Shown here: in pieces, positions 25,176-43,966 of the stretch
Position numbering within the stretch: position 1 is the first letter of the stretch
How the letters are laid out: every line of letters starts with the position of its first letter
IMG/VR virus record: IMGVR_UViG_3300027710_000011
Span: 124,001 to 188,000 of that record
Direction: 5' to 3' (one strand)
DNA: 64,000 nucleotides
The notes under the pieces: generated by a model
Told to the model about the DNA's origin: nothing
The model's database searches: none
The model's input: only the letters and a program-made list of their open reading frames with translations
Translations under genes and position numbers: made by a program

Positions 25176-25276
25176 GATGTATTTTCTGTCGGTTGTTTAG
25201 TGCAGACCACGACTTTCAACAAGAAAGTCATTAGGAGAATTCTACATACAATGAAGAACGCAGAAAGCTGGTTGAA

Positions 25277-25312
25277 ATAAAACGAGTGAGCTTAAACACT
25301 CACTCGTTTTAT
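25277..25312. terminator. intrinsic terminator
   Basis: AATAAAACGAGTGAG...CTCACTCGTTTTATT. Confidence 0.8.
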
Positions 25313-25323
25313 TATTACGCCAA

Positions 25324-26553
25324 TTACGCCAACTTAGCGTTGATGCTTTGCTCTTCCACGTCACGGATGCGCGCAAGCGCTTTATTCAACGATGTGCATT
25401 CGCTATCGATTGCTGAGCTGAGCTTAGTGATCGAGGTGATGTCTTTGATGATGCCGCCGAGAATTTCGCGCATCTGCGAAGCCTTCATGGGACCATAGGT
25501 TTTTCTACCTGTGAGCTTGAGGTCGATATCATTATCGTGACGGCGCAGATGGTCCTTGAAATTCTTCATCTCTTGCTCAAGACTCTTGGACAGAGTTGTC
25601 AAGCTGAGAGCGCCGCTTTCGCCGAGGAAACGAGCGTAGTCCGAAACCACATCCTCGATTTCAGAGACCAGATCATGGCTGATCTTGCTCGTGTTTTCTT
25701 CAGACGGCTCATCACCACCACCAATCAGAGATTGCGTGACCACGAAGTAGTTCTTGCAGAACGAAGCTGTGGACGACAGAGTGTTCGTGTGATTGATGCG
25801 CTCGGTTTGAACTCCGATCTTCACGCCGGCGTGCCAGGTCTTTTCATCGAACTTCTTCTCAAAGTTCAAGAGCTGACGTTGTGCAGCTTCCATCTTGTTC
25901 AGCACGCTGACATCCATCGTTTCTTCAACGTGACCAGCTTCGGCTTCATTGGCCGCGATACGAGTCTCAGCCAGGTCGGCGACGATCGGGACGTATTGCT
26001 CAATAGCTTTGGAAAGCTCGAGCATACTGGCGCAGCGCTTGCGAATGCTGTTGATCTTGCGGCTATCAGCCGAACGGCCAACCATGTGCTTGAATGCGGA
26101 CACGGTTTCCTTGAGATGCTTGAAGCCATTGCGGAACTTCTCGATAGCCCAAGCAATGAAAGCCTTGATCTTTTCGACCACGTAGGCGATCATCTGTTTG
26201 ATCTTGTCGATGATGGCTTGAGACTTGTCGCTGGTCGAAACTTGTTCGACATTCATAACGGCGCTGGACTCGAGGGCTGGTGTGAACACAGCGCCACTGA
26301 TACCGGACGATGCACCAGCGATGTCGCCGATCACTTGAACCAGAGCGATGTCGGTGGCGTCGAGTTCTTTCAGGGATTCCAGAACCAGGCTCAAGTTTTC
26401 CAGACCAACAGCCACATCTTCGGCTTGCTTGGCATCGGTCAGGCAGTTCTCGATGTCCAGCACTTGGGCCAGACCTTCGTAGGTGTTAGCTACGGCGTCA
26501 GCTTCGGCTTCGGCTTCCAGAGCCAGAGACAAAGCGATATTCTTTTCAGTCAT
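25324..26553 (-). CDS. internal head protein
   Basis: LALE/GLE/PALE sites and an amphipathic helix; ATG at 26553 with GAGG SD. Confidence 0.7.
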   Translation of the reverse strand: MTEKNIALSLALEAEAEADAVANTYEGLAQVLDIENCLTDAKQAEDVAVGLENLSLVLESLKELDATDIALVQVIGDIAGASSGISGAVFTPALESSAVMNVEQVSTSDKSQAIIDKIKQMIAYVVEKIKAFIAWAIEKFRNGFKHLKETVSAFKHMVGRSADSRKINSIRKRCASMLELSKAIEQYVPIVADLAETRIAANEAEAGHVEETMDVSVLNKMEAAQRQLLNFEKKFDEKTWHAGVKIGVQTERINHTNTLSSTASFCKNYFVVTQSLIGGGDEPSEENTSKISHDLVSEIEDVVSDYARFLGESGALSLTTLSKSLEQEMKNFKDHLRRHDNDIDLKLTGRKTYGPMKASQMREILGGIIKDITSITKLSSAIDSECTSLNKALARIRDVEEQSINAKLA

Positions 26554-26616
26554 GTCAAACCTCTTCAGGGTTGGTAACTTGAGCTTAGTCAAGTTTTGTT
26601 AAATGCGTCATAAGAA

Positions 26617-26648
26617 GAGTATCAGATCCTTTTACGGATCTGATACTC
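26617..26648 (-). terminator. hairpin/terminator
   Basis: GAGTATCAGATCC-TTTTAC-GGATCTGATACTC. Confidence 0.7.
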
Positions 26649-26695
26649 AACTATGATCAGTCTACTGAAATGATCGCGTTATGCAATTCTGAACA

Positions 26696-28219
26696 TTACT
26701 TCAGGAGTGCAGTTTCGCCATCATTCTTTTCAGCTTTGCCTTCAAGCTTGGCAATACACAGATCAACGTAACGGATCACGTTGGCACTGGTACTGATAGC
26801 GAAAGCGAACGAACGCTCGTGGATGCCGGCGGCCAGGGCAGGAGCGATTGCGGAAATCGAGCGCAGGAAATCGCGGTCCTCATCAGCGAGGTCAACGTCT
26901 TCCTTGGATTCGATGTTTGCAACAGCTGCTTCCAGTTTGGACACCAGAATCTTGCCGGCCTTGAAATCACGCTGGAACTTGCGAATGATCGAAGTCGTCT
27001 TGATGACTGTCTCGAGGACATTCAACAAACCTTCCGGAGGCAGAACATCAAGGTCTTTGAGTTCAGCGTTGTCCGTGCGCTTGATCATGTATTCGAACTC
27101 GCGCAGATCTTCCGTGGTCTTGGGCAGACACAGAACACCCACGTGGTTACCAGGCAGCAAGTCGGTGGTCAGCACATCAACACGATCACCAGCGCCGTCG
27201 ATGTCGAATTCGGCATTGCTGGAGTCATGAGGGAAGTGACCGTCCAACGCACGCTTGAGCACGCGTGGGAAGTTTTCCATCATGCGACCGATATCCTTGT
27301 CCTGAACGAATGCTTCGATCAGGGTGTTCAGATAGTCGATGTAACCGGAGTCAGCAGACTCATAGGCGTCCTTGACCAGGTCGTGCATGTTCTGGAAAGC
27401 TGCATCGTTCCAGCCAGAATCCGTGTAGCCCAGCGCCATCTTCAGTCGTTGGTTGCTGATGACAGCACCTTCACCGACTGTGGAGCCACGCAGGCCACGA
27501 ACGCGCGAACGCATCGACATCGCGGCACGCTCAACTTTGGCGGCTGTGTTGAAGATACTGGCGAAGAATTCTTGAGCATGCACGTAGGCACGACGAACGG
27601 CCTCGATGATCGTGCGCAGCAGACGCACGACTTGATCGCGAATGCTGCTGACCTTTTCACGCATGCTGGCACCAAAGCCTGCGCCGTCCTCGAGGGCCAC
27701 TGCAGGGTTTTCCAAGCCAAGCTTGTTGTAGATGCTCTCAATCGCCAGATCAAGAACAGCACGACCGGCATCGGTGTCAGCTTCAACGGCCTTGGTTTCT
27801 TCGGCAGAGCTTGCCAAGTCTTCCAGCTCATGAACGGCCACGCATGCCTTCTTCAGGTCACTGGCGTTGGCATCAAGAGCACGTTCGCCGTCACGCATTT
27901 CGCCGACGTCTTCCAGGATGTCGATAATGTCGACTTCGCCGGCTTCGAGCTCAGGTGCGTCAGGATCCAGAGGACCATCTTCATCAAGCACTTCGTCAGC
28001 GGGTGTCTCGCGACTACCTTCGTCAACTTCATCGGCCACGACTTCTTGGATGGCTTCCACCGTGGTTTCAGGCTCTACCACCGGAGCGTCATCGGTACCA
28101 GCAGCAGGCACTTCGTCCTGATTACCAGTAGCTTCGCCGCTTTCCAAAGGCACTTCTTCACGACCTTCAGCAGTTGCTTCGAGAGCAACACGCATCAAGT
28201 TGTTTTGATTTTGTTTCAT
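26696..28219 (-). CDS. internal head protein with acidic propeptide
   Basis: VALE/AIE/VALE sites, acidic N-terminal third and an amphipathic helix. Confidence 0.7.
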   Translation of the reverse strand: MKQNQNNLMRVALEATAEGREEVPLESGEATGNQDEVPAAGTDDAPVVEPETTVEAIQEVVADEVDEGSRETPADEVLDEDGPLDPDAPELEAGEVDIIDILEDVGEMRDGERALDANASDLKKACVAVHELEDLASSAEETKAVEADTDAGRAVLDLAIESIYNKLGLENPAVALEDGAGFGASMREKVSSIRDQVVRLLRTIIEAVRRAYVHAQEFFASIFNTAAKVERAAMSMRSRVRGLRGSTVGEGAVISNQRLKMALGYTDSGWNDAAFQNMHDLVKDAYESADSGYIDYLNTLIEAFVQDKDIGRMMENFPRVLKRALDGHFPHDSSNAEFDIDGAGDRVDVLTTDLLPGNHVGVLCLPKTTEDLREFEYMIKRTDNAELKDLDVLPPEGLLNVLETVIKTTSIIRKFQRDFKAGKILVSKLEAAVANIESKEDVDLADEDRDFLRSISAIAPALAAGIHERSFAFAISTSANVIRYVDLCIAKLEGKAEKNDGETALLK

Positions 28220-28255
28220 GTCTAATCCCTTTTCAAGATTGCTACGTAGTAGTTA

Positions 28256-28285
28256 AGACGAGAGGTATTTCTACCTCTCGTCTCA
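28256..28285 (-). terminator. hairpin/terminator
   Basis: GACGAGAGGTA-TTTC-TACCTCTCGTC. Confidence 0.7.
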
Positions 28286-28292
28286 ATCCTGA

Positions 28293-30290
28293 TTAGGCTG
28301 CGGCAGGAGCCGGGGCTGCTCCCGCAGCCCCGGCAGGAGCTTCAGCCTTCTTCGGGGCCAGAGCGGCCAGCGACTTCTTGCAGTAGTTCAGCGAAGCGCT
28401 GTTGTTGGCGAACGCAACCTTCACGGCATTCGAAGTCAGGCCGGCAGCCAGTTGATGCAGAACCTTGCCCAATGCGGGATCGGGTTTGGCATCAGCACCG
28501 GCAGCTTTGGCGGCGTAACCGTTGAAGCTGTTCAAAGCACTCTTGAGCTGACGACTCATGTTGGTCAGAGCAGACATGCTCTTGGCGCTGTTGGCGATCA
28601 CAGTGGCCAGGCCGCGGACTTCAGGAGCAGACAGAGCCGGGATTGCGGTTGTCGCAACTTCGGCCGGGACGTACTGACGGCCGAAAGCCATCTTGGGCAG
28701 ATCAGCAGCAGTCTTGGGAACGTAAGCCCACAGGACTTGGTTGCCAGGCAGAACGGGCGAAGCAAAGCCCTGCGTGCCTTCAGGAGCAGCGGCAACGCCC
28801 AGCGAAGCCAGATCGTTGTTCGGCTTCAGAGCAGCAGCCACGTTGCCGTAGATTGCTTGAACCAGCTTTTCCTTGTTGGCCAAGCTGGCATCACCGGTTT
28901 CACCAGCGCGCTCAACCATCTTGGTGATGCCGTCGACGAAGATGCCGCCGTTGGCAGCAATTTTGTCCAGTGTGCCGTTGACGGACACCATCTGCTGCAC
29001 GATGTTCTTAGGAACAGCGGTGCCGATGGCGAAAGCCTTAGCCAAAGCAGCGTCTTCCAGCGGTTTGTCGGAACGAGCATCGCCCATGGCTGTGGCTTGT
29101 TTCAGCAAGCCAGCTGCTTGTTGACCTTGGAGAACGGCGCCAGAGGCCAGCTTGTCGTAGAAACCGATGACCATGCTGATGAATTTGGCGATGGCGGCCT
29201 TGATGACTTCCCACACGTCCTTGGCGGTCTGCTTGATTTCTTCCAGAGCGATGGAAGTTGCCGAGATGCGGACGCCAGGCTGTTCAAAGGACTCCATGGC
29301 CAGGATGCCGATGGGAGGAGCCAGCTTCAAAGTTTGGTGGATGTGTTCCACAGCCACTTCCAGAACTTGAGCAGCAGCCTTGGGCAGGCCGCCTTCTTCA
29401 GCGCTGGATTCCACGATGTCGGCGATCTTGCTCAGGGCTTCACCACCTTCGTTGTAGGTGTTCAGCTCGGTGGCCATTTCGTCCAGCTCAGGTGCGATCT
29501 GATCAGCAGTGATCATTTCGGGCGAAGAGCCGATGGGGGTGGTATCGGAAGTGACAACCAGGTCTTCCTTGGACACGGCAGCTTCGGCACCTTCTTCGCC
29601 TTCAGCCTTGGTCTCGTCGATGGCGGACTGCACTTCTTCAGCAGCAGCATCCGACTCGGCAGGAGTCGGCGTAGCGTCCACAGCGGGTTCGTCAGCAGCA
29701 GGCACTTCAGCCGCAGGGGCGTCAGCGGCCGGTTCAGCTGCAGGCTCACCGCCTTCAACAGGAGCCGCGTCGGCGGCAGGAACTGCGTCAACCGCAGGCG
29801 CGTCTTCAGCAGGAGGTGCATCGGCAGCAGGTGCTGCGTCAGCAGGAGCATCGGCCGGGACGTCGGCTGCGGGAGCAGCGGCTTCGCCTTCGGCAGGCAC
29901 AGCGTCGACAGCAGGTGCGTCCACAGCGTCAGCAGCGACATCAGCAGCGCCACCGGCATCGGCGGGAGGAACTTCAGCGACAGCTTCAGGCACCACTTCA
30001 GCCACAGGCTCAGCAGGAGCGGGAGGCACTTCCACCACAGCAGTACCTTCGGCCGGCTTGGAAGCTTGTTCCACTTCGACCTTGATGATCACGGTCGGAG
30101 CAGTTGTTTCGGCCACAGGAGCGACTTCGGGAACACCGGCTTCACCAGCGCCGGCGGCCACGGCGTCAGCGGTCGTGTCGGCAGCGGCTTCGGTCGGCAC
30201 AACCGCGGGGACTTCGTCAGATTCCAGAGCGACAGCGGATTGGCGGGCCATCAAGCCGGCGAGAACTGCGCGGTTCAGATTACGTTGCAT
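28293..30290 (-). CDS. major internal head / inner-body protein (gp93-family-like) with long Ala/Pro/acidic propeptide
   Basis: VALES, ~200 aa of low-complexity A/P/D/E, AMESF...IALEE, amphipathic helix and LPGN; strongly biased codons. Confidence 0.75.
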   Translation of the reverse strand: MQRNLNRAVLAGLMARQSAVALESDEVPAVVPTEAAADTTADAVAAGAGEAGVPEVAPVAETTAPTVIIKVEVEQASKPAEGTAVVEVPPAPAEPVAEVVPEAVAEVPPADAGGAADVAADAVDAPAVDAVPAEGEAAAPAADVPADAPADAAPAADAPPAEDAPAVDAVPAADAAPVEGGEPAAEPAADAPAAEVPAADEPAVDATPTPAESDAAAEEVQSAIDETKAEGEEGAEAAVSKEDLVVTSDTTPIGSSPEMITADQIAPELDEMATELNTYNEGGEALSKIADIVESSAEEGGLPKAAAQVLEVAVEHIHQTLKLAPPIGILAMESFEQPGVRISATSIALEEIKQTAKDVWEVIKAAIAKFISMVIGFYDKLASGAVLQGQQAAGLLKQATAMGDARSDKPLEDAALAKAFAIGTAVPKNIVQQMVSVNGTLDKIAANGGIFVDGITKMVERAGETGDASLANKEKLVQAIYGNVAAALKPNNDLASLGVAAAPEGTQGFASPVLPGNQVLWAYVPKTAADLPKMAFGRQYVPAEVATTAIPALSAPEVRGLATVIANSAKSMSALTNMSRQLKSALNSFNGYAAKAAGADAKPDPALGKVLHQLAAGLTSNAVKVAFANNSASLNYCKKSLAALAPKKAEAPAGAAGAAPAPAAA

Positions 30291-30392
30291 GTTGAAACTC
30301 CATTCGAATGGGGATGTACTTTTTGGTACGAATTCAGAAAAGCCTACTTCCGGAAAGGCTTTATCTACAGGATTGTGAGGCTGAGGCGTTTT

Positions 30393-30992
30393 TTAATCGT
30401 TCATGCCGAACAAGATGTGACCAGTGGTCAGCATGTCACTGAAGCCGCCGGACTGATGCATCCATTGTTGAACGACTTCGTCGATCGACAAGTTCAACTG
30501 AGCGACTTCGGTCAGATTACGGCGACCAAAGTAAGTGACTGCTTTCTCAGACAACGCAGTCGAACTCACGCGGCGCTCGTCTTCATCCAAGATCACGTTC
30601 CAGTTCTGGACAGCCATGCGGCGATTACCCGTCATCAGGTAGTGCAGCGTGTCATCCAAGAAGTCCCGGTGAGTTTCACCAAAAGAGGGACTTTGGAATT
30701 GAGCTGTATACCACTCAGCGAAGTTTGTGGTACCGAAGGCCAGCATGAAGTCCAGCATGGCTTGTTCTTTGAAGTCGAACTTGCGAGCGTTCAGGTCATT
30801 ACGACCCAGACTCTGGTACGCGCTTTCCACCTTCAAGTTCGCAATGATGACCTTGTCATCGTTGGTATCGAACAAGGAGACGTCGTATTGCAGACGGCCC
30901 GACGGACGAGGCTTGCGTTCCAGGATTGGCTCAAGCTGGGCACCCAGGAAACCTCGTGGGTAAATCTTGAACTTTCCGAGAAGGCTGTTCAT
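30393..30992 (-). CDS. conserved jumbo-phage protein (gp91-like)
   Basis: YPRGFLG..L.P, W...Q..SP; synteny. Confidence 0.6.
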   Translation of the reverse strand: MNSLLGKFKIYPRGFLGAQLEPILERKPRPSGRLQYDVSLFDTNDDKVIIANLKVESAYQSLGRNDLNARKFDFKEQAMLDFMLAFGTTNFAEWYTAQFQSPSFGETHRDFLDDTLHYLMTGNRRMAVQNWNVILDEDERRVSSTALSEKAVTYFGRRNLTEVAQLNLSIDEVVQQWMHQSGGFSDMLTTGHILFGMND

Positions 30993-31906
30993 TACGCACC
31001 CTCCAGCTCAGCCACGGTTGCTTGCATAGCTTGCACACGTGACTCGCATTGAGCGATGGTCTTCTCCAGCTTGGCGTTCGGGCGCTTGGCTTGGAGTTCC
31101 TTCATGAGCTGCAAACGCAACTCGATGAGGCGCAGCTCTTCCTTGGATTCGTTGAAGCGAGCGACTTGCCACTCGGCAATCACCATGCGAACGAAGTAGA
31201 TCGGATTTGCCTTGGTGGCAATGATGCCTGCCTTCATCGGATCGAGCTTGTTGAGGCCCACCGTGGAGTTCAGGTTGTTCTCGTTGGATTCGCTGACCGT
31301 GATTTCAGGGACTTCGTTCAGCTTCTTCATCACCGTAGCAACGTCGCCGATGGCAGTACCGTAGGCGACCAAGAAGTCGCTGAAGGTTTCTTCCAACCAC
31401 TTGCGCTCGTCCTTGGTGATGGAATCTTCGATCACGGTGCCGGATTCTTCATACCGGGCGCTCTCGTAAACGAAGATCATATTCAGCCACTTGCGGCCGT
31501 ACTTGGACACCAGGTAGATTGCGTTGACGTACTGCAGCACAGCGGCTTGCTTGTAGGTCAGGCCCAGCGACGACACTTGCCCAGACAGGTTTGCTTGCAC
31601 CAGCTTCTCAGCCGTGTTCAAGTTTTCCTGCACCGTCTTCAGATGGTGAGCGATGTGAACAATGGGGTTACCATTGTCAGGGCCGGAAACGCTGCGCTTG
31701 AAGTCGGAAACCATACCGGAGATGGTCTCATCCTTGAACTTCCAACTGCGAGCCAAGTCGGCCGCGAAGCTGTAGGATGCTTGAAGCTTTTCGAGTTCAC
31801 CACGAGTGATGCGGATGTCCTCGATGATGGTGTCCTTGTTGAAAATGGCCACCAGTTTCGAAACGAAGTCTTTGAATTTCATAAGGTCTACGGACCCGAC
31901 TCTCAC
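30992..31906 (-). CDS. virion head protein (gp90-like)
   Basis: NPIYFVRM.IAEWQ followed by a coiled-coil C-terminus; start may be ATG 31882. Confidence 0.65.
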   Translation of the reverse strand: MRVGSVDLMKFKDFVSKLVAIFNKDTIIEDIRITRGELEKLQASYSFAADLARSWKFKDETISGMVSDFKRSVSGPDNGNPIVHIAHHLKTVQENLNTAEKLVQANLSGQVSSLGLTYKQAAVLQYVNAIYLVSKYGRKWLNMIFVYESARYEESGTVIEDSITKDERKWLEETFSDFLVAYGTAIGDVATVMKKLNEVPEITVSESNENNLNSTVGLNKLDPMKAGIIATKANPIYFVRMVIAEWQVARFNESKEELRLIELRLQLMKELQAKRPNAKLEKTIAQCESRVQAMQATVAELEGA

Positions 31907-34255: not shown

Positions 34256-37180
34256 ATGAACAACACAGTCGCTTCCCGTCTAGGGGATGTATCGAAATTC
34301 ATGTACAACCCCTCGGCAATTCAACGAGCTGCGGTTGGCTTGATTTCAGCAGTGACGAACGGCGAGATTGAACTTGTTGATCCGAGCAATCCGGTGGTCA
34401 TGTGTATTGAAAATGCATCGATCAATACTGCTGCTTGGATGATCGAGAATGCAGCTCTGACTCGTCGCCAATACCCGGCTGCTGCCCAGACGATCGAAGA
34501 TCTCTATCCTCACATGAGCGATAAAGATTACATCGATCGCTTTGCAGTACCCACTAAAGGCAACTTCGTCTTCTTCTTCGGTGAAGATGAGATCTTGTCT
34601 AAGCTGGTGGCCGATGCCAGCAACAACGGTGTTCGTAAAGTTGTGATTCCTCGCAACACTTACGTGACGGTCAACGATACGGTATTCAGCTTGCAATACC
34701 CGATCGAGATTCGCCAGATGGCTCACGGTGGTTTGCAGATCGTTTACGACGTAGATGCGCTGTCTCCGCTCCAACGCCTGGCTACCAACTTGATCGAATG
34801 GAAGATCTTGACTGCTGCTGACGGTACTCGTCTGCTGGCCTTCTCGGTCGAGATGACTCAGTTCAAGATCAACAGCCAAAACAACTCAGTGACGAACGCC
34901 ACTGGTTTTGTGCAGAACATCGCGATCACTGATCAATTCTTCTTTGGTCGTGTGTTTCAAAAGAACAACGATGGTTCGTACAAAGAACTGGCTACCACTC
35001 ACACGGAAGAGATCTTTGATCCGGCGACACCTACCGCTGTCTTCACGGTCTTAGAAGGCTCTGTTCGCGTCAAGATCCCTCAGGTCTACTTGACAACAGG
35101 AATGGTGAGTGGTTCGATTCGGATTGACATCTACGAAACCAAAGGTGTTTTGTCGATGAACATGATCTCGTATCGTCCCGAGCAATACTTGCTCAAGTAC
35201 GAAGCATACAGTCCGAGCGAGAAGAATGAGTACGTTGCTCCTTTGGCAACATTGCGCATCAACAGCGTGATGTCGTCTTCGGTGATCAACGCTGGTCAGA
35301 ACGGTCTGACATTCGAGCAGCTTCGCAAACGCGTTATCAGCAATGCGATTGGCTCTCCTGATCTCCCGATTACCAATACGCAGATCGAAGCATCTCTGGA
35401 GCGTGAAGGTTACGCTGTTGTTAAGAACATTGACAACATCACCAATCGTGCATTCCTGGCTGCTCGCTCGTTGCCTGATCCGCAAGCCAGTGAATTGATC
35501 ACAGCAGCTGCTGCGGGTATCAGCACGTTGTCTACTTCAGTCGAAGACGTTGTCAAGGTCTCTACGGTTGTGAATAACGGTGACGTTGTCACGATCAAGC
35601 CAGAGACCTTGTACAAGAACATCAACGGTGTTGTGCAGATTGTTTCTGATTCTGAAGTGTCTGCGCTGAGCGCAATGCCTCCTGATCAGATGGCGATCGT
35701 GGTCAACAATGCCAACTACATGTACACGCCTTTCTACTACGTGATGGATTCGTCCAGCAACGAGTTTGGTTTGCGTGCCTACCACTTGGATACTCCTATT
35801 GTGGAATCCAAGTCGTTCATTGGCGAGAACGATACGACGCTGTTGCAAGTCGGTACTGACCAGTACTCAATCATTCGGTCCGCAAACGGCTATGTGATTG
35901 AAATCCAGACCAAGAGCTCTGATGACTGGAAGGGTTTGCGAGACGATCAAGTGTTTGTCCAGCTGGCTTACATCCCGACGGGCGACGTTGATCGCGCTTA
36001 CGTGCAAGGCATGCTGGTCGGTAAGTCGGATGAGGGTGAACGCATCTATCACTTCCCGATCAATACCACTTGGAAGATTGGCGCAGATAACGAGATGCAA
36101 GTCTCGTCGTTCCTGATGTTCAACAATACACCTCGCAATGTGAACTTGCCGTTGCTGAAGGACTTCGATGTTCTTTACTCGACAAACACGCCTCGTGGTG
36201 CCAATTGGGTTGTGAGTAATACAGACGCGTTCTTGGGCTACTTCTTGCTGCCTCAGGATACGTACGCCATTACTCACGAGACTCTGTCGGTGCGCTTGGG
36301 TCACTTCTTGAAATACTTGTGGTGCCGTGCTCGCACTATTGTTGGTGAAGCCAATTACGAGAAATGGGCGATGGATGTTCCTGCTCTTTACGCAGAGGAC
36401 ATTTATCAAACAGATCCAGTGACCGGTTCTGCATTTGAGATTGATGCTGACGGAAACCTTCAATACACGATTCTCCACAAGAAGGGTGATCCTGTTATCG
36501 ATGATCATGAACGACCTGTTTACAAGCATCGTATCGGCGACATCAAGCTTGACGCCTACGACAGTCCTATCGTGATCAACTCACGCAATCTGGTTCGCCA
36601 GATGGACATGTTCTTGATTGAAGGCAGTTACTACCTGGCCACTAACCAGGTGACTGCTGAGTATCGGAACTACTTGCGTACGACGGTGGTGGATTGGCTG
36701 ACAGAAGACTTGCCCAGCATGGGTAACAACCTTCTGGAACAAACCAGTCTGTTCTACTACCCGATCACAAGCGTGGGACTGATCAAGGTCTTGTTCGCTA
36801 ACGGCCTGGAAACCTATCTAGAAGCCGGTCAATCGTTCCGCTGTACCCTGTACGTCAACAGTGCTGTGTACAACAACTACGACCTGCGTGCGACACTGAC
36901 TGTGAACACCATCAAGACGATCAGTCTTGAGTTGCAAAAGCGCATTGTGTCAATGTCCAACATCATTGACGCATTGAAGACTTCCTACAAGGACGACGTC
37001 ATTTCGATTGAGATGTCCGGTCTGGGTGGGAACAAGAATCTCAACGTGGTAACGATCATCGATGATGCGCAGCGCTTGTCGCTTCGTAAGATGTTGGTGA
37101 CTCGTAACGACGAGACGCTTGGTTTGCAAGAAGGTGTCGAAGTTACGTTTGTGCTTCACGAAAGAGCTAGTTTGATGTAA
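34256..37180 (+). CDS. large virion structural protein (gp87-like, baseplate wedge candidate)
   Basis: 974 aa; DPSNP, LY.HMSDKDY, FSLQYPIEIR, DNITNR. Confidence 0.65.
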   Translation: MNNTVASRLGDVSKFMYNPSAIQRAAVGLISAVTNGEIELVDPSNPVVMCIENASINTAAWMIENAALTRRQYPAAAQTIEDLYPHMSDKDYIDRFAVPTKGNFVFFFGEDEILSKLVADASNNGVRKVVIPRNTYVTVNDTVFSLQYPIEIRQMAHGGLQIVYDVDALSPLQRLATNLIEWKILTAADGTRLLAFSVEMTQFKINSQNNSVTNATGFVQNIAITDQFFFGRVFQKNNDGSYKELATTHTEEIFDPATPTAVFTVLEGSVRVKIPQVYLTTGMVSGSIRIDIYETKGVLSMNMISYRPEQYLLKYEAYSPSEKNEYVAPLATLRINSVMSSSVINAGQNGLTFEQLRKRVISNAIGSPDLPITNTQIEASLEREGYAVVKNIDNITNRAFLAARSLPDPQASELITAAAAGISTLSTSVEDVVKVSTVVNNGDVVTIKPETLYKNINGVVQIVSDSEVSALSAMPPDQMAIVVNNANYMYTPFYYVMDSSSNEFGLRAYHLDTPIVESKSFIGENDTTLLQVGTDQYSIIRSANGYVIEIQTKSSDDWKGLRDDQVFVQLAYIPTGDVDRAYVQGMLVGKSDEGERIYHFPINTTWKIGADNEMQVSSFLMFNNTPRNVNLPLLKDFDVLYSTNTPRGANWVVSNTDAFLGYFLLPQDTYAITHETLSVRLGHFLKYLWCRARTIVGEANYEKWAMDVPALYAEDIYQTDPVTGSAFEIDADGNLQYTILHKKGDPVIDDHERPVYKHRIGDIKLDAYDSPIVINSRNLVRQMDMFLIEGSYYLATNQVTAEYRNYLRTTVVDWLTEDLPSMGNNLLEQTSLFYYPITSVGLIKVLFANGLETYLEAGQSFRCTLYVNSAVYNNYDLRATLTVNTIKTISLELQKRIVSMSNIIDALKTSYKDDVISIEMSGLGGNKNLNVVTIIDDAQRLSLRKMLVTRNDETLGLQEGVEVTFVLHERASLM

Positions 37181-37199
37181 AAAATAAAAGGAGTGTTGG

Positions 37200-37252
37200 A
37201 AGGAGTGTAACCGCCATAGCTAAAAAGCTAATGGCGGTTACACTCCTTTTAT
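37200..37252. terminator. long bidirectional terminator between convergent genes
   Basis: AAGGAGTGTAACCGCCAT...ATGGCGGTTACACTCCTTTT. Confidence 0.85.
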
Positions 37253-37253
37253 T

Positions 37254-37967
37254 TTACGTCTTATTTACAGCTTCTTCTATTGACAACTTATCCCGATTGA
37301 TTCTTTGATGAAGTTTCCAATACGGGATCCCTGATGATTTTGATATCTCAGAGAGACTCATCTGTTGTCCATTGAATAAGAAAGTTTTTGGTTGTGTGAG
37401 TGGGCCAAAAACCTTATCTAGTGGCCAGTTGTTATTTAATCGATTTTCAAGTGTAGCTACTTCAATCCCGATTAAATTGGACCATTCAGAAAGCGTAAGC
37501 GTCTTATCATCAAAAGTGTAAGTGCTTGGTTTGCGAATTTCAGGATTTAAAGCTTCGCTGACGCTAGCGCCTTTACTTAATCTTGTATAAATTGTCTTAG
37601 CAGAAACATTCAACTTTCTGCTCATTTCAGCTACAGTTCCTTTATTTCCATCGTGTTCCAGTACGACATTTGTTCTAAGATTGTTAGCTTGCTCCATAGG
37701 AGTTGCCCAACGACAATTACCAGGTTCGTAATTCCCATTCATGTCGGGGAAGCGATCAATTGAATATTCAGGGCCAGGCTTAGAACCCATATCGGTATAG
37801 AAGTTTTCGAAAGAATTCCTCCATCGATCACAAATCGTAATACCACGACCACCGTAGTTGTGATAAGCAGGATTATTTTGATTAAAACAACGAGCGATCA
37901 TGCTACACCAGCTTTGGTACTCGCTAGTCTTGGACATTCCGTGCGTGCTATTTATACCAGTTACCAT
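37254..37967 (-). mobile_element. free-standing HNH homing endonuclease
   Basis: HGMS...EY.SW.SM..RC.N....Y.NYGGRGITIC.RW..SFENF..DMG.KP...SIDR..D.NGNYEPGNCRWAT..EQANN plus 3 HTH-like repeats; AT-rich; GGAGG SD before ATG 37967. Confidence 0.9.
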
Positions 37968-38110
37968 AATGCCATCCTCCAATTCTTGACACAAAGGTGA
38001 TATGTGGTTATAAAACCGTAGACTTCGTTCTGCATGAGCGCGCAAGTCTTCGTTAATTGAGACGTCATAAATGGAGGGATCACTCCCTCCATTTATGCTA
38101 TCTAGTTTGT

Positions 38111-39562
38111 TTACGAATAAACAAGCTTCTCGATTGCTTCCGGTGTAGAGTTCACCAGGGTTGCCATCTTCTTGCAGTATTGACCCACAAAGAAATCCAT
38201 GTCGATTTGGAAATTCATGCACGCTGTGAGCAATTTCACAGTGTGTTTGTGAATCCAAATCGCCAGCTGCATAGCTGCTTTCAGGAGGTGGTGAACTTCC
38301 TTGATCAACGCAGTGTTGCTGCTCTTTCTCATCTTTTCAATGATAGTAAAGCAACTTTTCATGCAATCGTCGAGGCTGTTCGTTTCTTCAGCTGCGCCCT
38401 TCTCACTGAACTGAATTTCCTTGTTGACAATGAGAATGCGTTCAGCGATGAAACCTAACGTCACCGTATCGCTTTGCTGTTCCGTCATGGGCTCGATGCC
38501 GTCGGTCATTCGCTCCAGCTTTTGAATGTAGCCGAACAAATCACCGTCATGTATACGAGACAGACGTCTCATATAGGTCGATAGCTGTCTCTGAAGATCT
38601 CTATCGGTGGAATCTGCATCAAGACCTTTTAACGTGTCTTTAACAGCGGCGAGCACGTCACCGTTCTGTGCTTTTGAGGAAATGATCTCTTCAAAAACAC
38701 GATCGGTTCTTGAAACAGTAATCGCGCCGTGTTCGTTCTCACAAAACCCCACACGAACTTGTTTCAATCTGTCGAGCAACTTTTCAGTAGCGTCAGAGAT
38801 GGCTGTTTGATCGGACAGGTCTTTTGACAGTTTGGAAACACTGTCGACAAGCTTCTTGGGAGTATGGAAGTTTTTCTCCAGAGCAGTCATGTTCTTTACG
38901 AGAGTTCCAAGACCCTCGCTGCTCTGACGATATTTCCGCATGAGATCGGAAGTGACAAACTTCTTGTACTGCACACGTATCCACTCGATCGCTTCGAGGA
39001 TATATTTCTTGAGCTTCTCAATCAGCTCTTCGATTTTCATCCCCACTTCAGTAGCGTCTATCTCTTTCGAGGATTCACTTCTGCCTAAGCGCTTGAGTCG
39101 AGCCGATATGATCGGATCTTTGGACAAATCAACCCCTTGGCGCTGGTAAAGGGGATTTCGGTTAAGCAGCGGTATGGCTTCAAGCAGCGCGCTTTTCATT
39201 GCTTGGTTGCCGTTTTTATCGGCACTGAAGCTATCTGCCTCATACTCAAACGAAGCCACAACGTTCTTACCAGGCTCGATCTTTTCCATATGGCCGCAAG
39301 CAATGTGACCATACTCGTGATCCATGATTGCATTTTTAGCGGATGCTGAAAGCTTATTCCAAATACTGGTGATCGCGAAGATGATGTGTTCACCGTAAAC
39401 GATCAGATCCGGCTCTCTCACGATGCTTTTGACGTCAATGACAGCGTGTTTTGGAATAGCACCAATCCCCACCATCTCCAGGTACTTGTAGGTACCCATG
39501 TCGGAGAAGTCGCTTTCTTCGATAAACAGAATCTGTCCGTACGCGCACTTTTCGGTTTTCAT
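38111..39562 (-). CDS. zincin-like (HEXXH) domain fused to an internal-head-protein module
   Basis: IMDHEYGH...EYEADSFSA, then DATE and the amphipathic helix IEELIEKLKKYILEAIEWI. Confidence 0.6.
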   Translation of the reverse strand: MKTEKCAYGQILFIEESDFSDMGTYKYLEMVGIGAIPKHAVIDVKSIVREPDLIVYGEHIIFAITSIWNKLSASAKNAIMDHEYGHIACGHMEKIEPGKNVVASFEYEADSFSADKNGNQAMKSALLEAIPLLNRNPLYQRQGVDLSKDPIISARLKRLGRSESSKEIDATEVGMKIEELIEKLKKYILEAIEWIRVQYKKFVTSDLMRKYRQSSEGLGTLVKNMTALEKNFHTPKKLVDSVSKLSKDLSDQTAISDATEKLLDRLKQVRVGFCENEHGAITVSRTDRVFEEIISSKAQNGDVLAAVKDTLKGLDADSTDRDLQRQLSTYMRRLSRIHDGDLFGYIQKLERMTDGIEPMTEQQSDTVTLGFIAERILIVNKEIQFSEKGAAEETNSLDDCMKSCFTIIEKMRKSSNTALIKEVHHLLKAAMQLAIWIHKHTVKLLTACMNFQIDMDFFVGQYCKKMATLVNSTPEAIEKLVYS

Positions 39563-39579
39563 TCTTTATTGCTCCCGTG

Positions 39580-40599
39580 TTAGTGCACGATGATGGGCAT
39601 TCTTGTTACGTTCTTTTGACCGATTTTGCTCATGAGTTGCGAAACCGTCTGAACGTAGACATCTGCTTTCTGAACGACAAATGCCTCAGCGTGAATGATG
39701 TCGGACAGCAACGTGACGACGGCGTCAGTTTTTGATCCAGAACCATCAGTGATAGCCTGCATGCCACCTTCGCTTTCAAGCGTCTTCAGAATTGCCGTCA
39801 ACGTCTTAACGTTGCTCTCATGCGCATCGTTAATGCTGTTAAAAATATTGACGATTTGTTCAATCTTCTTAGCGGCATCGTCAGTGTGGAGATTTTCACT
39901 CACAAGCTTATCAGCTTTTTCGTGAGCGTCGAGGGCCATTGATTTAAAGCTATCGACCTTATCCTTGAGGGACTTGAAGAATTGCTTATTTTCAATGAAC
40001 TTGTCCAGGTTAGCAGCCAGAGTGCTGATCCGAACACAGTCTTCACAAATCGCCATAAAGGCTGCGACATTTTCCTTATCAATGAATTCAGAAAAAATGG
40101 TTCGATCTTTTTCTGACATTTCATCAATAAGCTTATTGCCTTTGCTGGTGACAGAACTTGCAATCAAGGCAAAGCGATTTCCGACATCTTTCGGAACAAC
40201 ATCCTTGCCCTTAAAGAATTTGAGGATCAATGCCTTGCAGGCACGGAACCATTCTGCAAGTTTTGCGATAACAGCTTTGAAGAAGGAAATGATCTTCTGG
40301 ATGATTTCCTTGAAAACGGATTTCTTCTCACCGTCAACTGCCTCAAGGGCAAAGCTGTAACGAGTCTTCGTTACAGCTTGACTGTAGAAGCCCAGAGGGC
40401 AATCGTCAGTAACCATGCCAGGAACCAAGTCCATTGATTCCATAGCGATCTTCTGGTTCATACCACCGATTGCTTGGAGGCTGTTTCGCAGAGAGTCCAA
40501 GCCGCGAAGCTTGGTTACCAACGTACCGACGCTTGGATCTGGAGCGATTTCTTCGAGAGATACCGCGCCCAATTCCGCGTCTTCTTTAAAACCATTCAT
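39580..40599 (-). CDS. internal head protein (paralog of 40667-41965)
   Basis: GGMNQ..AMESM.LVP..VT.DCPLGFYSQ..TKTRYSFALEAV leader. Confidence 0.7.
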   Translation of the reverse strand: MNGFKEDAELGAVSLEEIAPDPSVGTLVTKLRGLDSLRNSLQAIGGMNQKIAMESMDLVPGMVTDDCPLGFYSQAVTKTRYSFALEAVDGEKKSVFKEIIQKIISFFKAVIAKLAEWFRACKALILKFFKGKDVVPKDVGNRFALIASSVTSKGNKLIDEMSEKDRTIFSEFIDKENVAAFMAICEDCVRISTLAANLDKFIENKQFFKSLKDKVDSFKSMALDAHEKADKLVSENLHTDDAAKKIEQIVNIFNSINDAHESNVKTLTAILKTLESEGGMQAITDGSGSKTDAVVTLLSDIIHAEAFVVQKADVYVQTVSQLMSKIGQKNVTRMPIIVH

Positions 40600-40666
40600 G
40601 TTGTTACCTCAGGTGTTTTTTATTCCGGAATTGGTGCGGTATCAGCACTCCTGCATTTATGCTGCT

Positions 40667-41965
40667 TCAGACATAAAGTCTTTGCACGCCCTCAATGTCG
40701 AGATGTTTTGCCAGCTCGTCACAATCGATGTGTTCGTTTTTTGGTTTGAACGATTGTGCTTTACTCATAGCCGTCTTAGCGATCCATTCATACCCGCGTA
40801 AAGAATCCTCAATAGCATCAACAAGGTACTTGAACTCATAAATGAAGTTCTTGCAGGACTCTGTCAATCGCGAGATTGATTTTTGCGCAGTGAGGATGGC
40901 TTTCATGTTCTCATCGATGTTGCGCATTTCGTCATCACTGACTTTGCCACTCATGTCAATCTTGAACAAGACTAAACCAGACGCGCTACTTGAAAAATCA
41001 CCGAAGAAAGCAAGTACTTTCTTGTTCTCTTTCGCAAAAAAGAGCAATTCAACAAGCTCATTCGGCGTGAGAGTTTTCTCGCCGCTGCTTTCAGAATGAA
41101 GTCTTTTTTCAAGGATCGAATTAGCAAGTGAGTTTAACTCGCTCACCAATTCTTTATTTGTGAAGAAAACGCTATGTCTGACGTTATCCGAGTTTCTAAT
41201 GAAGTCTTTAATTTCATCTTGCAGCTTGTGTGCAACTTCAAAAGCTTTGTGAAACTGTTTAAGAGTTTCAGGATGAGCTTTTAAATAGCGCAAAAAGGAC
41301 AACCTCAAACCAAATCTGGAAATTGGCTTTCTGGCGTACCAGACTGAATCACGAGCAAACTTGTCAACAAACACCTGAGATTCACTCTCAGAAATCCCAT
41401 GCACATACTGCACCAAAGATTCAGCGTACTTGTAGTTATCGGCCAACATTTCTTGATATTGCACGACAAAATGAAGAACGGCGTCGTGGGCGTTTGAGAA
41501 TTTGTTGGCTTGCGCCAAGGTCTTCTCTTTCACTTCTGGATCCAAGAAACGCTTGATGGCGTGAATGATCTTACCCATCCATTCCTTGAATTTCTCCCAC
41601 ATCCTCGTAAGGATACTCTTTCTTTCTTCCTCTACTGCTTCGAGAGCAAAGCTGTAGCGAGTCTTCGTGATGTCTTGACTGTAAAAGCCCAAGGGACAAT
41701 CAGCAGTGACAAGGCTTGGAACCAAGCTCATTGATTCCATGGCCAGCTGTTGATTCATGCCGCCAAGGTTTTCCAACGTAGCTTGGAGGTAATCCAGGCC
41801 GCGTTGTTTCGTCATCAAGGCACTGATGTCCAAATCTTCATTCAGCTCAGGAACTTCACCTGGCACAACTTCTTGGAAGACGGCTTGGTCAAATTCCTTA
41901 GCCGCTTCCTTTGCCGGCTCGATGACTTCATTATCGAGCTCAACACCTTCGTTAAGGCTTGACAT
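40667..41965 (-). CDS. internal head protein (paralog of 39580-40599)
   Basis: Same leader, different C-terminal domain. Confidence 0.7.
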   Translation of the reverse strand: MSSLNEGVELDNEVIEPAKEAAKEFDQAVFQEVVPGEVPELNEDLDISALMTKQRGLDYLQATLENLGGMNQQLAMESMSLVPSLVTADCPLGFYSQDITKTRYSFALEAVEEERKSILTRMWEKFKEWMGKIIHAIKRFLDPEVKEKTLAQANKFSNAHDAVLHFVVQYQEMLADNYKYAESLVQYVHGISESESQVFVDKFARDSVWYARKPISRFGLRLSFLRYLKAHPETLKQFHKAFEVAHKLQDEIKDFIRNSDNVRHSVFFTNKELVSELNSLANSILEKRLHSESSGEKTLTPNELVELLFFAKENKKVLAFFGDFSSSASGLVLFKIDMSGKVSDDEMRNIDENMKAILTAQKSISRLTESCKNFIYEFKYLVDAIEDSLRGYEWIAKTAMSKAQSFKPKNEHIDCDELAKHLDIEGVQRLYV

Positions 41966-41975
41966 GGTTTAGTCC

Positions 41976-42506
41976 TTAGCAGACGGGCGCCGAAATTGGC
42001 GAGACAGTCGCGATGGCTTCACCGTTGTTGGCTGCCACTTCAGCGTTCTTGGCTTCTTGAGCATCCTTGAGCTTTTGCAAGATGTCGCGGATGCCGATTT
42101 CCAAGGCGCCGATGTGAGTGGCCATGCGGTTCAAGGCGTCCATCTCTTCACGAGAGAAGTTGCGAGCAACATTGAAGTAGCCGCAGAAGTAGTCGTCCGG
42201 AGTTGTTGTGTGAACACGACGAACGTGGATGGTTTCGTAGCGCATCATCCAGAACTTGCGAACCAGTTCCAGCGACAGACGCACATCGAAAGGAGCAACT
42301 TCATTGAAAGCACCAACGTGGTCACGAGCAATCATCGCGCCGGAACGAGCGAATTCGGAAACAGCGCTGTCCACCTTAGCGGCCGGCACGGCAATGAAGT
42401 CAGCCACGCTGCTAGCAACAGCGGCAGCAATAGCGAAGGTGCGATCAGGGCCGGTCAGGCGAATGGTGGAAACGTTGCTCAGAAACTTGATGTAATCGGT
42501 TTTCAT
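41976..42506 (-). CDS. virion protein (gp85-like)
   Basis: FNEV....V...FW..RY; synteny. Confidence 0.55.
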   Translation of the reverse strand: MKTDYIKFLSNVSTIRLTGPDRTFAIAAAVASSVADFIAVPAAKVDSAVSEFARSGAMIARDHVGAFNEVAPFDVRLSLELVRKFWMMRYETIHVRRVHTTTPDDYFCGYFNVARNFSREEMDALNRMATHIGALEIGIRDILQKLKDAQEAKNAEVAANNGEAIATVSPISAPVC

Positions 42507-42520
42507 AATTCTCTTTCAGT

Positions 42521-43873
42521 TCAGATGGATTTGAGAGCTGCCGCCTTGGCGTACAGATCATTGTGGGCGAGACCTTCCAGTTGCCTTTGGAAGGTTACGT
42601 TGGCTTGACGGTTAGCCGCGTTGGCGTTGAAGAAAGCAAAAACCTTCGAGACGAGCGTGGGCTCAGAAGAACCGAGCTTGAGCACCTTATCCATGAAGGC
42701 AAGTTCTTCGTTCAGTTGTTTAACGTACGCAGCGTTAAACTTGGTGTTACCGCGAGCCAGAGCAACTTTAATTGCCTGCACCTGCTGGTTACGCAGTCTG
42801 ACCAAACGACCGTGGTTGCTATCGTACATAGGTTCGAAAGGACTCACATCTTCTTTAGAGATGAGACCAACGCCTAGGATTGCGGCCACGATACCGATGA
42901 TGACCATGAACGGGGCACCAGTAGCGACCAAGCCACCACCTAGTACGGTTGCAACAAGACCGCCGACGAAACGCGCAGCTTGAGTGTAGTAGAGCGTGGC
43001 GCGATCTTGCATCGAATAGTCCGGATTCCATTTCATCAGCTTATTCAAAGCTGAGAACAAATGAGCGCCAGCACCATGTCGAGCCGCGTATTGATCGGCT
43101 AACATTTCAAAGGTGTTCATGTCGTAAAAGCTATGGCCGGATTGTGTCCGGATTGCTTTCATGCCATTGCTCAAAAGCACAGTGCTCACCACCATGTCTT
43201 CAGCGTTTTCAATGGACTGAACGACGTTACGATCAATGCCAAGATCCTTACCGGCAGTCCTGATAATCGTCGCGCGCTTGCTTGGTTCTTTCACATTCAG
43301 AAGATCGCGTTGCAGCTCAGCCAATACTTGATTGGTGGAGACTGAACGATCCAGGAATTCCAGCGATGTCCAGAAGTGACCGATCTCGTGCAAAAGCAAA
43401 GAGCAGTATTCTTCATCGGTGAACTTGGCACCGAATGCTTCCTTGTACAACATCTCTCGACTCATGCTGAGTTCGCCATGAATTGTCTTGGAGATGCTTC
43501 CTGTTGCGACACATTTCTTCAAATCGAGACTGACGCTGAGTTCCTTCTTGAACGCATTGATTGACTTGATAATTTCATCGTTATTATCGATGGCAACAAA
43601 GTCGTAGGAATTGAAGATGTGACTCCAATCCAAACGCGTGAAGAAGATAGAACCAGTGGCTCCGACCGCTAGATCAAAGTTGATGATCAAGCCAGTGCGA
43701 TCAAGCACTGTCTTACTCAACCTCTTCTCCAGGTTTTCCCACTCGGCGTTCGAAGCCGCAGCGCGTTGATCAGTCGGAAAAGTAGCCAGGTCAGCTAACA
43801 GATCTTTGAAGAAACCGTCACCTTGAAAATGTATAGCTTCTGTCGCAATTGACAGATTCTTTTCGGTGGACAT
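42521..43873 (-). CDS. virion protein (gp84-like) with HEXXH motif and a hydrophobic hairpin
   Basis: IATEAI.FQ N-terminus, LLHEIGH, EMLADQYAARHG, two Gly-rich hydrophobic segments, LE.LA.N.LY C-terminus. Confidence 0.65.
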   Translation of the reverse strand: MSTEKNLSIATEAIHFQGDGFFKDLLADLATFPTDQRAAASNAEWENLEKRLSKTVLDRTGLIINFDLAVGATGSIFFTRLDWSHIFNSYDFVAIDNNDEIIKSINAFKKELSVSLDLKKCVATGSISKTIHGELSMSREMLYKEAFGAKFTDEEYCSLLLHEIGHFWTSLEFLDRSVSTNQVLAELQRDLLNVKEPSKRATIIRTAGKDLGIDRNVVQSIENAEDMVVSTVLLSNGMKAIRTQSGHSFYDMNTFEMLADQYAARHGAGAHLFSALNKLMKWNPDYSMQDRATLYYTQAARFVGGLVATVLGGGLVATGAPFMVIIGIVAAILGVGLISKEDVSPFEPMYDSNHGRLVRLRNQQVQAIKVALARGNTKFNAAYVKQLNEELAFMDKVLKLGSSEPTLVSKVFAFFNANAANRQANVTFQRQLEGLAHNDLYAKAAALKSI

Positions 43874-43939: not shown

Positions 43940-43966
43940 AAGAGGGAGGGTAGACCTCCCTCTTTA
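43940..43966. terminator. bidirectional terminator
   Basis: GCATAAAGAGGGAGG-GTAGA-CCTCCCTCTTTATGC. Confidence 0.8.

Follow-up and report, generated by a model that had tools for sequence, protein, structure and literature searches.

The locus described here raises the question of why a zinc metallopeptidase should sit at the front of a gene that lies among the head genes of a giant phage. The gene product, P0001, is a fusion of 483 amino acids (aa) encoded within a 64,000-nucleotide (nt) stretch of viral DNA (the window), which spans bases 124001-188000 of the 276,772-bp IMG/VR record IMGVR_UViG_3300027710_000011 (the whole record is labelled G000). The phage is uncultured and probably stems from a subsurface metagenome. 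P0001 is composed of a predicted N-terminal zincin, a short linker and a helical C-terminal domain (Table 1). The sequence-only reading of this DNA had noted a HEYGH...EYEAD signature in the N-terminal ~160 residues, followed by D-A-T-E, and the translation bears these positions out. In the explanation proposed, P0001 arose recently by a fusion peculiar to its lineage, within the hypervariable slot for ejection proteins (SPN3US gp47 / phiKZ gp86) of a phiKZ-like jumbo phage, and its zincin is packaged cargo. This explanation is offered tentatively, its chances being put clearly below even, and the broader reading of a packaged zincin cargo is rated about as high, likewise below even.

On the evidence of structure prediction, residues 1-160 of P0001 are a compact, soluble M48/M56-like gluzincin in which all catalytic residues are present and for which zinc binding and activity are predicted. 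The assignment is based on invariant motifs, the AlphaFold2 (AF2) fold, structural matches and a profile alignment with Ste24p. An exhaustive phmmer search finds residues 1-162 matched by six free-standing proteins, each 156-183 aa long (E 1e-33 to 1e-12; 32-42% identity), together with four further, weaker homologues. In the zincin alignment (11 sequences, the P0001 domain included), H82, E83, H86, E106, A109 and D110 are invariant; thus, the HEXXH of P0001 is not a chance motif. With this alignment, AF2 models residues 1-160 at a predicted local distance difference test (pLDDT) score of 90.4 and a predicted template modeling (pTM) score of 0.85, confidence being low from residue 161 on, and the end of the domain coincides with the end of the free-standing homologues (~160-183 aa). 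The first eight ranks of an all-against-all structural search (VIA-align) are all M48, minigluzincin or M56 (BlaR1) peptidases, namely ZMPSTE24 (Z 9.3), Ste24p (8.0), BepA (7.5), abylysin (7.0), 3c37 (6.8), selecase (6.6), jannalysin (5.6) and BlaR1 (5.5). Foldseek alone is weak for this domain (best E 0.04), and phmmer of the N-terminal domain against PDB sequences finds nothing; only the profile search worked, the zincin family profile aligning to Ste24p (E 3.3e-4) in two blocks, HEXXH and HEYQADAYA...P..RL. The Pfam M48 model (PF01435) gives 17.4 bits for the P0001 domain and 14.2 for the whole protein, below the gathering cut-off of 20.3, and matches nine of the 11 aligned zincins at E <= 0.1 (best 6.6e-8); PF18894 (PhageMetallopep) matches six of them. 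Look-alikes in the ESM Atlas agree with the M48/M56-type assignment, and a pattern scan of IMG/VR using the zincin alignment returns no relatives. The metallopeptidase-like domain that had been noted at the N-terminus is thus upheld as a genuine M48/M56-type zincin by predicted structure, profile and invariant residues.

Similarly to the M48/M56 peptidases and minigluzincins (Ste24/ZMPSTE24, HtpX, BepA and BlaR1; selecase, abylysin and jannalysin), P0001 has HEXXH, a third-ligand Glu in ExxAD and a C-terminal P..RL helix. By contrast to the M48/M56 peptidases, the P0001 zincin has no membrane spans, is only ~160 aa in length, is viral and is fused to a helical domain. Membership of the ImmA/IrrE (M78) family was considered and rejected: P0001 has no PF06114 match, two of the 11 homologues match weakly (0.0017), and no gene for a helix-turn-helix repressor adjoins the zincin in any context examined. 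The H86-to-E106 spacing fits the ImmA/IrrE range, in which the Glu lies ~20-25 aa downstream.

The mechanism proposed for P0001 begins with a free-standing-type, ~170-aa accessory zinc metallopeptidase that would have been joined by a flexible 12-residue linker to an all-helical domain. The helical domain, which starts with an amphipathic helix as in mature gp47-type proteins, would take P0001 into the prohead, where a gp175-type prohead protease would cleave within the exposed linker, C-terminal to E172 or E167. The zincin, folded and 19 kDa in mass, would be retained in the capsid, enter the host with the DNA and act there as a protease on host or co-ejected proteins. It is proposed to stay intact in the capsid because its only S/A/G-x-E protease motif (SFE106, in the zinc-ligand helix) is buried. 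The whole chain (packaging via the helical domain, a cut at E172 or E167, retention and injection) is regarded as doubtful. The predicted structure bears on the cut itself: residues 164-169 have a pLDDT below 50 in the full-length model, and the linker scores 59/44 in the domain model, so that ATE172 lies at the end of a low-confidence, probably flexible linker. With a hydrophobic moment of 0.54, the helix of residues 175-196 ranks at the 99.6th percentile among all 22-aa windows of the genome. Moments of 0.54-0.73 are found for the window that follows A-x-E in the gp47-like proteins W_432, W_339, W_412, RP12 ORF247 and ORF248, FLC9 gp342, P0016 and P0022, and this window is the most amphipathic of its protein in six of the eight. 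In the full-length model, a helix at residues 170-203 (pLDDT about 70) leads into an all-helical region of low confidence, the C-terminal domain having a pLDDT of 27-72 that is mostly below 60.

The gene lies in a slot that is syntenic in SPN3US (gp45-gp48), Ralstonia phage RP12, Burkholderia phage FLC9, the closest relative of this phage (L016) and the metagenomic contigs L009 and L023. The 450-aa and 573-aa SPN3US genes of the slot are gp45 and gp47 by size (50.3 and 63.3 kDa) and site. Mass spectrometry shows gp45 to be a head protein cut at ASE-20 and gp47 to be cut at ALE-111, and SPN3US uses ATE sites in gp50, the capsid protein and the portal (PMC10052503). The essential gp47 is a presumed ejection protein in the phiKZ gp86 position, a fast-diverging, hypervariable slot, and its propeptide is considered by the SPN3US authors to target the protein to the prohead (PMC5694885). 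The mapped gp45 site, AVASE/S (the slash marks the cut), aligns to SIATE/A (IATE12) of P0002, the gp45 homologue of the window; thus, A-T-E is the predicted site in P0002. A phiKZ gp175-type prohead protease homologue is encoded at G000 232760-233470 on the minus strand, beside a gp176 homologue. It is detected by tblastn with phiKZ gp175 (34% identity, E 9e-36) and not by PF03420 (T4 gp21 protease). These results support the sequence-only reading in part: the protease gene is present, ATE is used by SPN3US and the gp45 site has its counterpart in P0002. The five genes from P0002 to P0001 look like one transcription unit, since like hairpins stand after P0001 and after the W_412 stop codon (43946-43962), where the hairpin separates W_412 from the P0002 unit. 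From this layout, P0001 appears to be co-transcribed, presumably late, with the head genes P0002 to W_339.

The start of P0001 is 17 nt past the W_339 stop codon, its Met1 lines up with Met1 of every homologue, and a Shine-Dalgarno sequence, GGGAG, is located 9 nt upstream; the aligned Met1 and this GGGAG make the start call sound. P0001 is the sole full-length copy among 1.84 billion protein representatives searched with phmmer. When the locus (by megablast) and P0001, P0003 and P0007 (by tblastn) are compared with 50,697 phage records, the only match is a chance-level one to Dinoroseobacter (E 0.7), and megablast finds no cultured phage that matches the P0001 locus at the DNA level. A word-index protein search with whole P0001 or residues 1-170 returns only P0001 itself, NCBIfam offers nothing useful for P0001, and PHROGs has no match for P0001, its C-terminal domain, P0003 or P0004 and a single weak one for P0007 (phrog_18577, E 0.0011).

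Relatives of the zincin are found in two kinds of gene neighborhood. In L009, a W_339 orthologue is followed by a free-standing zincin of 183 aa and a 158-aa gene, facing a 972-aa gene. In L023, a gp45-like gene, a gp85-like gene, several gp47-like paralogues and a W_339 orthologue are accompanied by zincins of 174 and 177 aa, facing a 973-aa gene. The zincin genes of this 25.5-kb contig are in tandem (8001-8525 and 8562-9095), and the second is 67% identical to the L009 zincin. The zincin tree supports an L009/L023 clade (95/94) with P0001 outside it and is poorly resolved elsewhere. The notion that the zincin is a degenerate or derived propeptide was rejected, as the zincins form a conserved, independently occurring enzyme family; since that family is otherwise always free-standing, the P0001 zincin is an independent enzyme that became fused. 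The other neighborhood is near RNase H/UvsX genes (L002 10001-10501; also L003 and L006-8), a site at which G000 has an unrelated Cys-rich open reading frame (ORF) of ~110 aa with a CPAC...CC..C..C pattern, outside the window at about 260,037-260,370 (+). The free-standing zincin nearest to P0001 (P0004, L003 2303-2854; 42% identity) ends in ...RLKRLGWDGVKPGEAKATEPLAEAA, with an A-T-E behind an RLxRLG helix that aligns to ATE172. This A-T-E may be chance or a motif older than the fusion.

A number of results weigh against the packaged-cargo explanation. P0001 has 11 S/A/G-x-E sites where 7.7 are expected, and the motif is so frequent that it is little informative alone. SPN3US leaves 42 head proteins unprocessed, some of them despite having the motif. 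A hidden Markov model (HMM) of the 'site plus helix' segment, built from 15 of the proteins with this layout and run on 286 ORFs, ranks true internal head proteins outside its training set 4th-6th and P0001 9th (E 0.9, residues 179-195), a match that is suggestive without being significant. The gp47-like family profile has no homology to P0001 by hhalign (probability 2%). Thus, of the claim that P0001 carries the same amphipathic helix as the other head proteins, the likeness in position and hydrophobic moment stands, and homology cannot be demonstrated. The C-terminal domain (173-483) has no relative by phmmer (1.84 billion proteins), in PHROGs or in Pfam, including PF12699. By BLASTP, it has no homology to W_339, W_432, W_412, RP12 ORF247 or ORF248, FLC9 gp342, the 158-aa gene of L009 or the second zincin gene of L023. 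The cluster nearest to it by language model, with a score of 0.77 that is below counting level, is an 'internal head protein family' in which 33% of members carry PF12699, and the family alignment places neither of the conserved gp47-type propeptide motifs (GGMNQ... and TKTRYSFALEA) in P0001. The description of the C-terminal domain as a head-protein module is therefore putative: the position of the gene, the helical character and the weak language-model lead favor it, whereas no sequence or profile homology to any internal head protein is found and the family propeptide is absent. The zincin is free-standing in every phage found other than that of P0001, and in L002, L003, L006-8 and L025 its neighbors are genes of the UvsX-like, RNase H and SMC-like types; because it occurs alone, also among genes of DNA metabolism, its function needs no capsid-targeting partner. 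Moreover, the closest relative, the 276,853-bp ENA contig L016 (flanks 84-86% identical at the nt level; 974-aa protein 91% identical in aa), has at this locus one gp47-like gene and no W_339, P0001 or HNH gene. P0001 is thus dispensable, and the same absence marks it as an accessory, lineage-specific fusion in an indel hotspot. Finally, the fusion junction is spanned by no independent contig and only by the probable source sample.

This last point, together with the sole full-length copy in the protein collections searched, would be expected of a mis-assembly or of a non-functional chimera left by a recent neutral deletion. Such an origin is nevertheless highly improbable. A Logan contig of the probable source run covers 36800-42000 without differences, so that two assemblies agree with zero differences over 5.2 kb. 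An independent sediment metagenome (run X2, from another study), which holds a relative about 92% identical, has short contigs ~90-95% identical over the C-terminal domain, the N-terminus and W_339, and a freshwater run contains 184 identical bases of the zincin. The 25 P0001 differences listed for the sediment sample, C-terminal domain included, fall at third (19), first (4) and second (2) codon positions, and the 19 third-position changes argue for purifying selection on both halves. The catalytic residues are intact, and the gene has a proper ribosome-binding site (RBS) and terminator. Comparison of these sequences argues for a real fusion whose frame is under purifying selection. A real gene may still never reach the capsid: P0001 may be an accessory protease that acts unpackaged in the infected cell, for example on host defense or regulatory proteins. 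The helical domain would then be a substrate-recognition, oligomerization or regulatory module, and the end of the operon an accessory-gene hotspot. The zincin copies that at least four contigs have next to such DNA-metabolism genes (UvsX-like, RNase H, SMC-like), the indel hotspot with its adjoining HNH gene and without P0001 in L016, and a C-terminal domain with neither head-protein homology nor a targeting propeptide all agree with this account. It is considered unlikely, though by no means negligible, as the zincin adjoins W_339 orthologues in three divergent phages, P0001 is apparently co-transcribed with homologues of proven head proteins, and its linker and amphipathic helix are laid out as in the neighboring cleaved proteins.

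Packaging need not entail cleavage. An uncut P0001 would be ejected whole, as a 55-kDa two-domain fusion and minimal 'polyvalent protein', with the zincin active in cis or in trans after ejection. Most SPN3US head proteins, as noted above, are unprocessed, full-length transfer is described for N4 virion RNA polymerase (vRNAP) and for polyvalent proteins of the ArdC type that bear zincin domains (PMC5512222), and the ATE starts the predicted helix 170-203, which could hide it. By contrast, the disorder predicted for residues 164-169, the second motif (SKE167) and the invariant ALE/A that neighboring paralogues keep at the equivalent place before the helix speak for a cut, and ejection of an intact fusion is judged improbable. 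The zincin may instead be a morphogenetic helper that trims or clears gp47-like paralogues or released propeptides, the fusion serving only to localize it to the prohead core. This role would be in keeping with the W_339 orthologue-zincin gene pair that is kept in L009, L023 and the window, with the cutting of long SPN3US propeptides into several pieces and with the maturation role that Iyer et al. proposed for another, conserved zincin of phiKZ-like phages (PMC7824862). It has only a small chance of being correct, however, since the gene is dispensable (the L016 locus and all cultured phiKZ-like phages in the records searched are without this zincin family), the RNase H-context copies lie away from head genes, and the known propeptide cuts are all accounted for by the motif of the serine prohead protease. 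Packaged zincin cargo freed by the prohead protease is retained as the working explanation, at the tentative level given at the outset.

Table 1. Features of P0001 and of the surrounding gene slot, with positions in the window.
Feature	Position	Strand	Basis or remark
P0001, 483-aa fusion (zincin + linker + helical domain)	38111..39562, stop codon included	-	open ORF
Predicted zincin domain, compact, M48/M56-like, aa 1-160	39083..39562	-	AF2, structural matches and profile
HEYGH, aa 82-86; predicted two zinc-ligand His and catalytic Glu	39305..39319	-	H82, E83 and H86 invariant
EYEAD, aa 106-110; E106 predicted third zinc ligand, M48-type ExxAD	39233..39247	-	E106, A109 and D110 invariant; aligns to Ste24p THEYQADAYA block
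Linker, aa 161-172 (RSESSKEIDATE), with two S/A/G-x-E motifs, SKE167 and ATE172	39047..39082	-	low pLDDT; motif count
D-A-T-E, aa 169-172	39047-39058	-	verified in translation
Amphipathic helix, aa 175-196 (MKIEELIEKLKKYILEAIEWIR), just after candidate site	38975..39040	-	part of predicted helix 170-203
Orphan all-alpha C-terminal domain, aa 173-483 (311 aa)	38114..39046	-	predicted helices; no relatives
Terminator-like hairpin, AAATGGAGGG-AGTGAT-CCCTCCATTTAT	38067..38094	-	after P0001 stop, closing transcription unit; one of 16 copies of hairpin type in genome
W_339, gp47-like head-protein paralogue, propeptide ending FALE/AV	39580..40599	-	in L009 and L023, orthologue immediately followed by free-standing zincin
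W_432, gp47-like head-protein paralogue, propeptide ending FALE/AV	40667..41965	-
gp46 / phiKZ gp85-like small protein, 176 aa	41976..42506	-	phrog_30916 1.7e-16; weak PF25615 match; synteny
P0002, conserved zincin-like head protein, SPN3US gp45 homologue	42521..43873	-	phrog_2767 2.7e-60; HEIGH at 162, FEMLAD at 255, IATE at 9-12
W_412, propeptide-type head protein, LALE/AVEGA and amphipathic helix	43982-45220	-	weak PF12699 match limited to helix (profile positions 89-139)
HNH homing-endonuclease gene, free-standing, just downstream of P0001	37254..37967	-	phrog_3377 2.4e-64; own GGAGG RBS; absent from L016 locus
974-aa conserved virion structural protein, SPN3US gp48 position, convergent with P0001 unit	34256..37180	+	phrog_3248

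The neighboring genes include a second zincin-like protein. P0002 combines an M48-like signature (HEIGH at 162 and FEMLADQYAARHGA at 255) with a long hydrophobic region that covers about aa 296-337, and in alignment both P0002 and gp45 carry HEXGH...W/F-E-x-x-AD-x-FAARHGA. On these motifs, P0002/gp45 is probably the 'conserved uncharacterised zincin' of group-1 jumbo phages (PMC7824862), and the enzymatic nature of this core head protein seems to be unstudied. W_432 and W_339 are 56% identical in the propeptide. About 4.5 kb of the window (37171-41637) stands in place of about 1 kb of L016 (8329-9305), where the gp47-like protein P0016 has an N-terminus like that of W_432 (72%) and a C-terminus like that of W_339 (37% over 207 aa); these mixed ends suggest recombination between paralogous propeptide regions. 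The 974-aa protein has homologues in 290 phiKZ-like phages, the nearest in FLC9 and RP12 (~43% aa identity). The longest-ORF call of the HNH gene (to 38258) overlaps P0001 and is probably too long.

Sixteen palindromic intergenic hairpins of the form ATAAA-(N)GGAGGG-loop-CCCTCC(N)-TTTAT, often followed by G (TTTATG), are found in G000, with those of the window at about 23719 and 38073. In sequence, they look like bidirectional terminators. The trailing TATG recalls the short late-promoter motif reported for phiKZ; a sigma-70 promoter scan is uninformative for this phage type. Elsewhere in the window, four genes for PF12699 (phiKZ_IP) internal head proteins of 473, 422, 507 and 665 aa are clustered at 23754-30290 (-). 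The 28-30 kb stretch has a guanine-plus-cytosine content of 0.59, compared with about 0.49 elsewhere, and contains long wrong-strand ORFs (e.g., 28452-31052 (+), 866 aa).

The phiKZ-like phages pack tens of megadaltons of ejection proteins, hardly any of which have a known activity. In its rate of evolution the gp47/gp86 slot equals the tail fibers, and it is suspected of a role in host takeover. A member of this slot with a recognizable enzyme offers a concrete biochemical handle, for which a target can be sought, and suggests a route by which accessory enzymes may be recruited into the capsid, namely fusion to an internal-protein-like domain across a protease-sensitive linker. More generally, the propeptide slot of giant-phage ejection proteins may be usable as a cargo slot, in which an enzyme N-terminal to the cut is freed in the head and injected as a first-minute effector, an idea that is itself rather unlikely to hold. 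If true, the slot would show the T4 capsid-targeting-sequence principle inverted in nature, and the zincin would be the first biochemical activity assigned to a protein of the hypervariable gp47/gp86 slot. An enzyme on the discarded side would mean that propeptides are not always waste, and engineered protein delivery by giant phages could copy the design. If P0001 is not packaged, it would be a modest case of domain shuffling in an accessory-gene hotspot. The literature searched contains no description of a gp47/gp86-slot protein with an enzyme in the portion that maturation usually removes.

Among known systems, the closest in position are SPN3US gp47, phiKZ gp86 and 201phi2-1 gp148 (phrog_32764; PMC5694885, PMC10052503). 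P0001 occupies the same slot, between the gp46/gp85-like gene and the convergent ~975-aa gene in the apparent transcription unit of the gp45 homologue, and has a candidate A-x-E site, a hydrophobic/amphipathic helix at once thereafter and then a fast-evolving helical domain. Unlike gp47/gp86, P0001 is without the conserved ~100-aa propeptide (GGMNQ...TKTRYSFALE), has a folded, predicted catalytically intact zincin in its place and shows no detectable homology in the mature part. The SPN3US gp45 family (phrog_2767) shares with P0001 the M48-like HEXXH and ExxAD and the same operon, gp45 being a proven head protein and prohead-protease substrate. The gp45-type proteins are core proteins of about 450 aa with a propeptide of 12-20 aa, about 90 aa from HEXXH to Glu and a hydrophobic segment, whereas the P0001 zincin is compact and accessory with a spacing of ~20 aa; only the motif region is common to the two (hhalign probability 16%).

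The T4 internal proteins and Alt are carried into the prohead, cut after Glu by the head protease and injected with the DNA, the Alt cargo being an enzyme. In T4, however, a short N-terminal capsid-targeting peptide is discarded and the cargo is C-terminal to the cut, while the P0001 enzyme would sit N-terminal, in the 'propeptide' position. Polyvalent proteins with zincin-like metallopeptidase (MPTase) domains are predicted to be delivered together with DNA, and their zincin is proposed to act in processing of the polypeptide or against host proteins (PMC5512222). A polyvalent protein contains 2-15 domains, most of them enzymatic, and the MPTases belong to separate clades; by contrast, P0001 has one enzyme, an M48-like zincin, and one structural-looking domain, and its delivery is a proposal. 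By analogy, the logic of P0001 would thus be familiar from T4 Alt and the internal proteins and from zincin-bearing polyvalent proteins, and what would be new is an enzyme on the discarded side of the cut in the gp47/gp86 slot.

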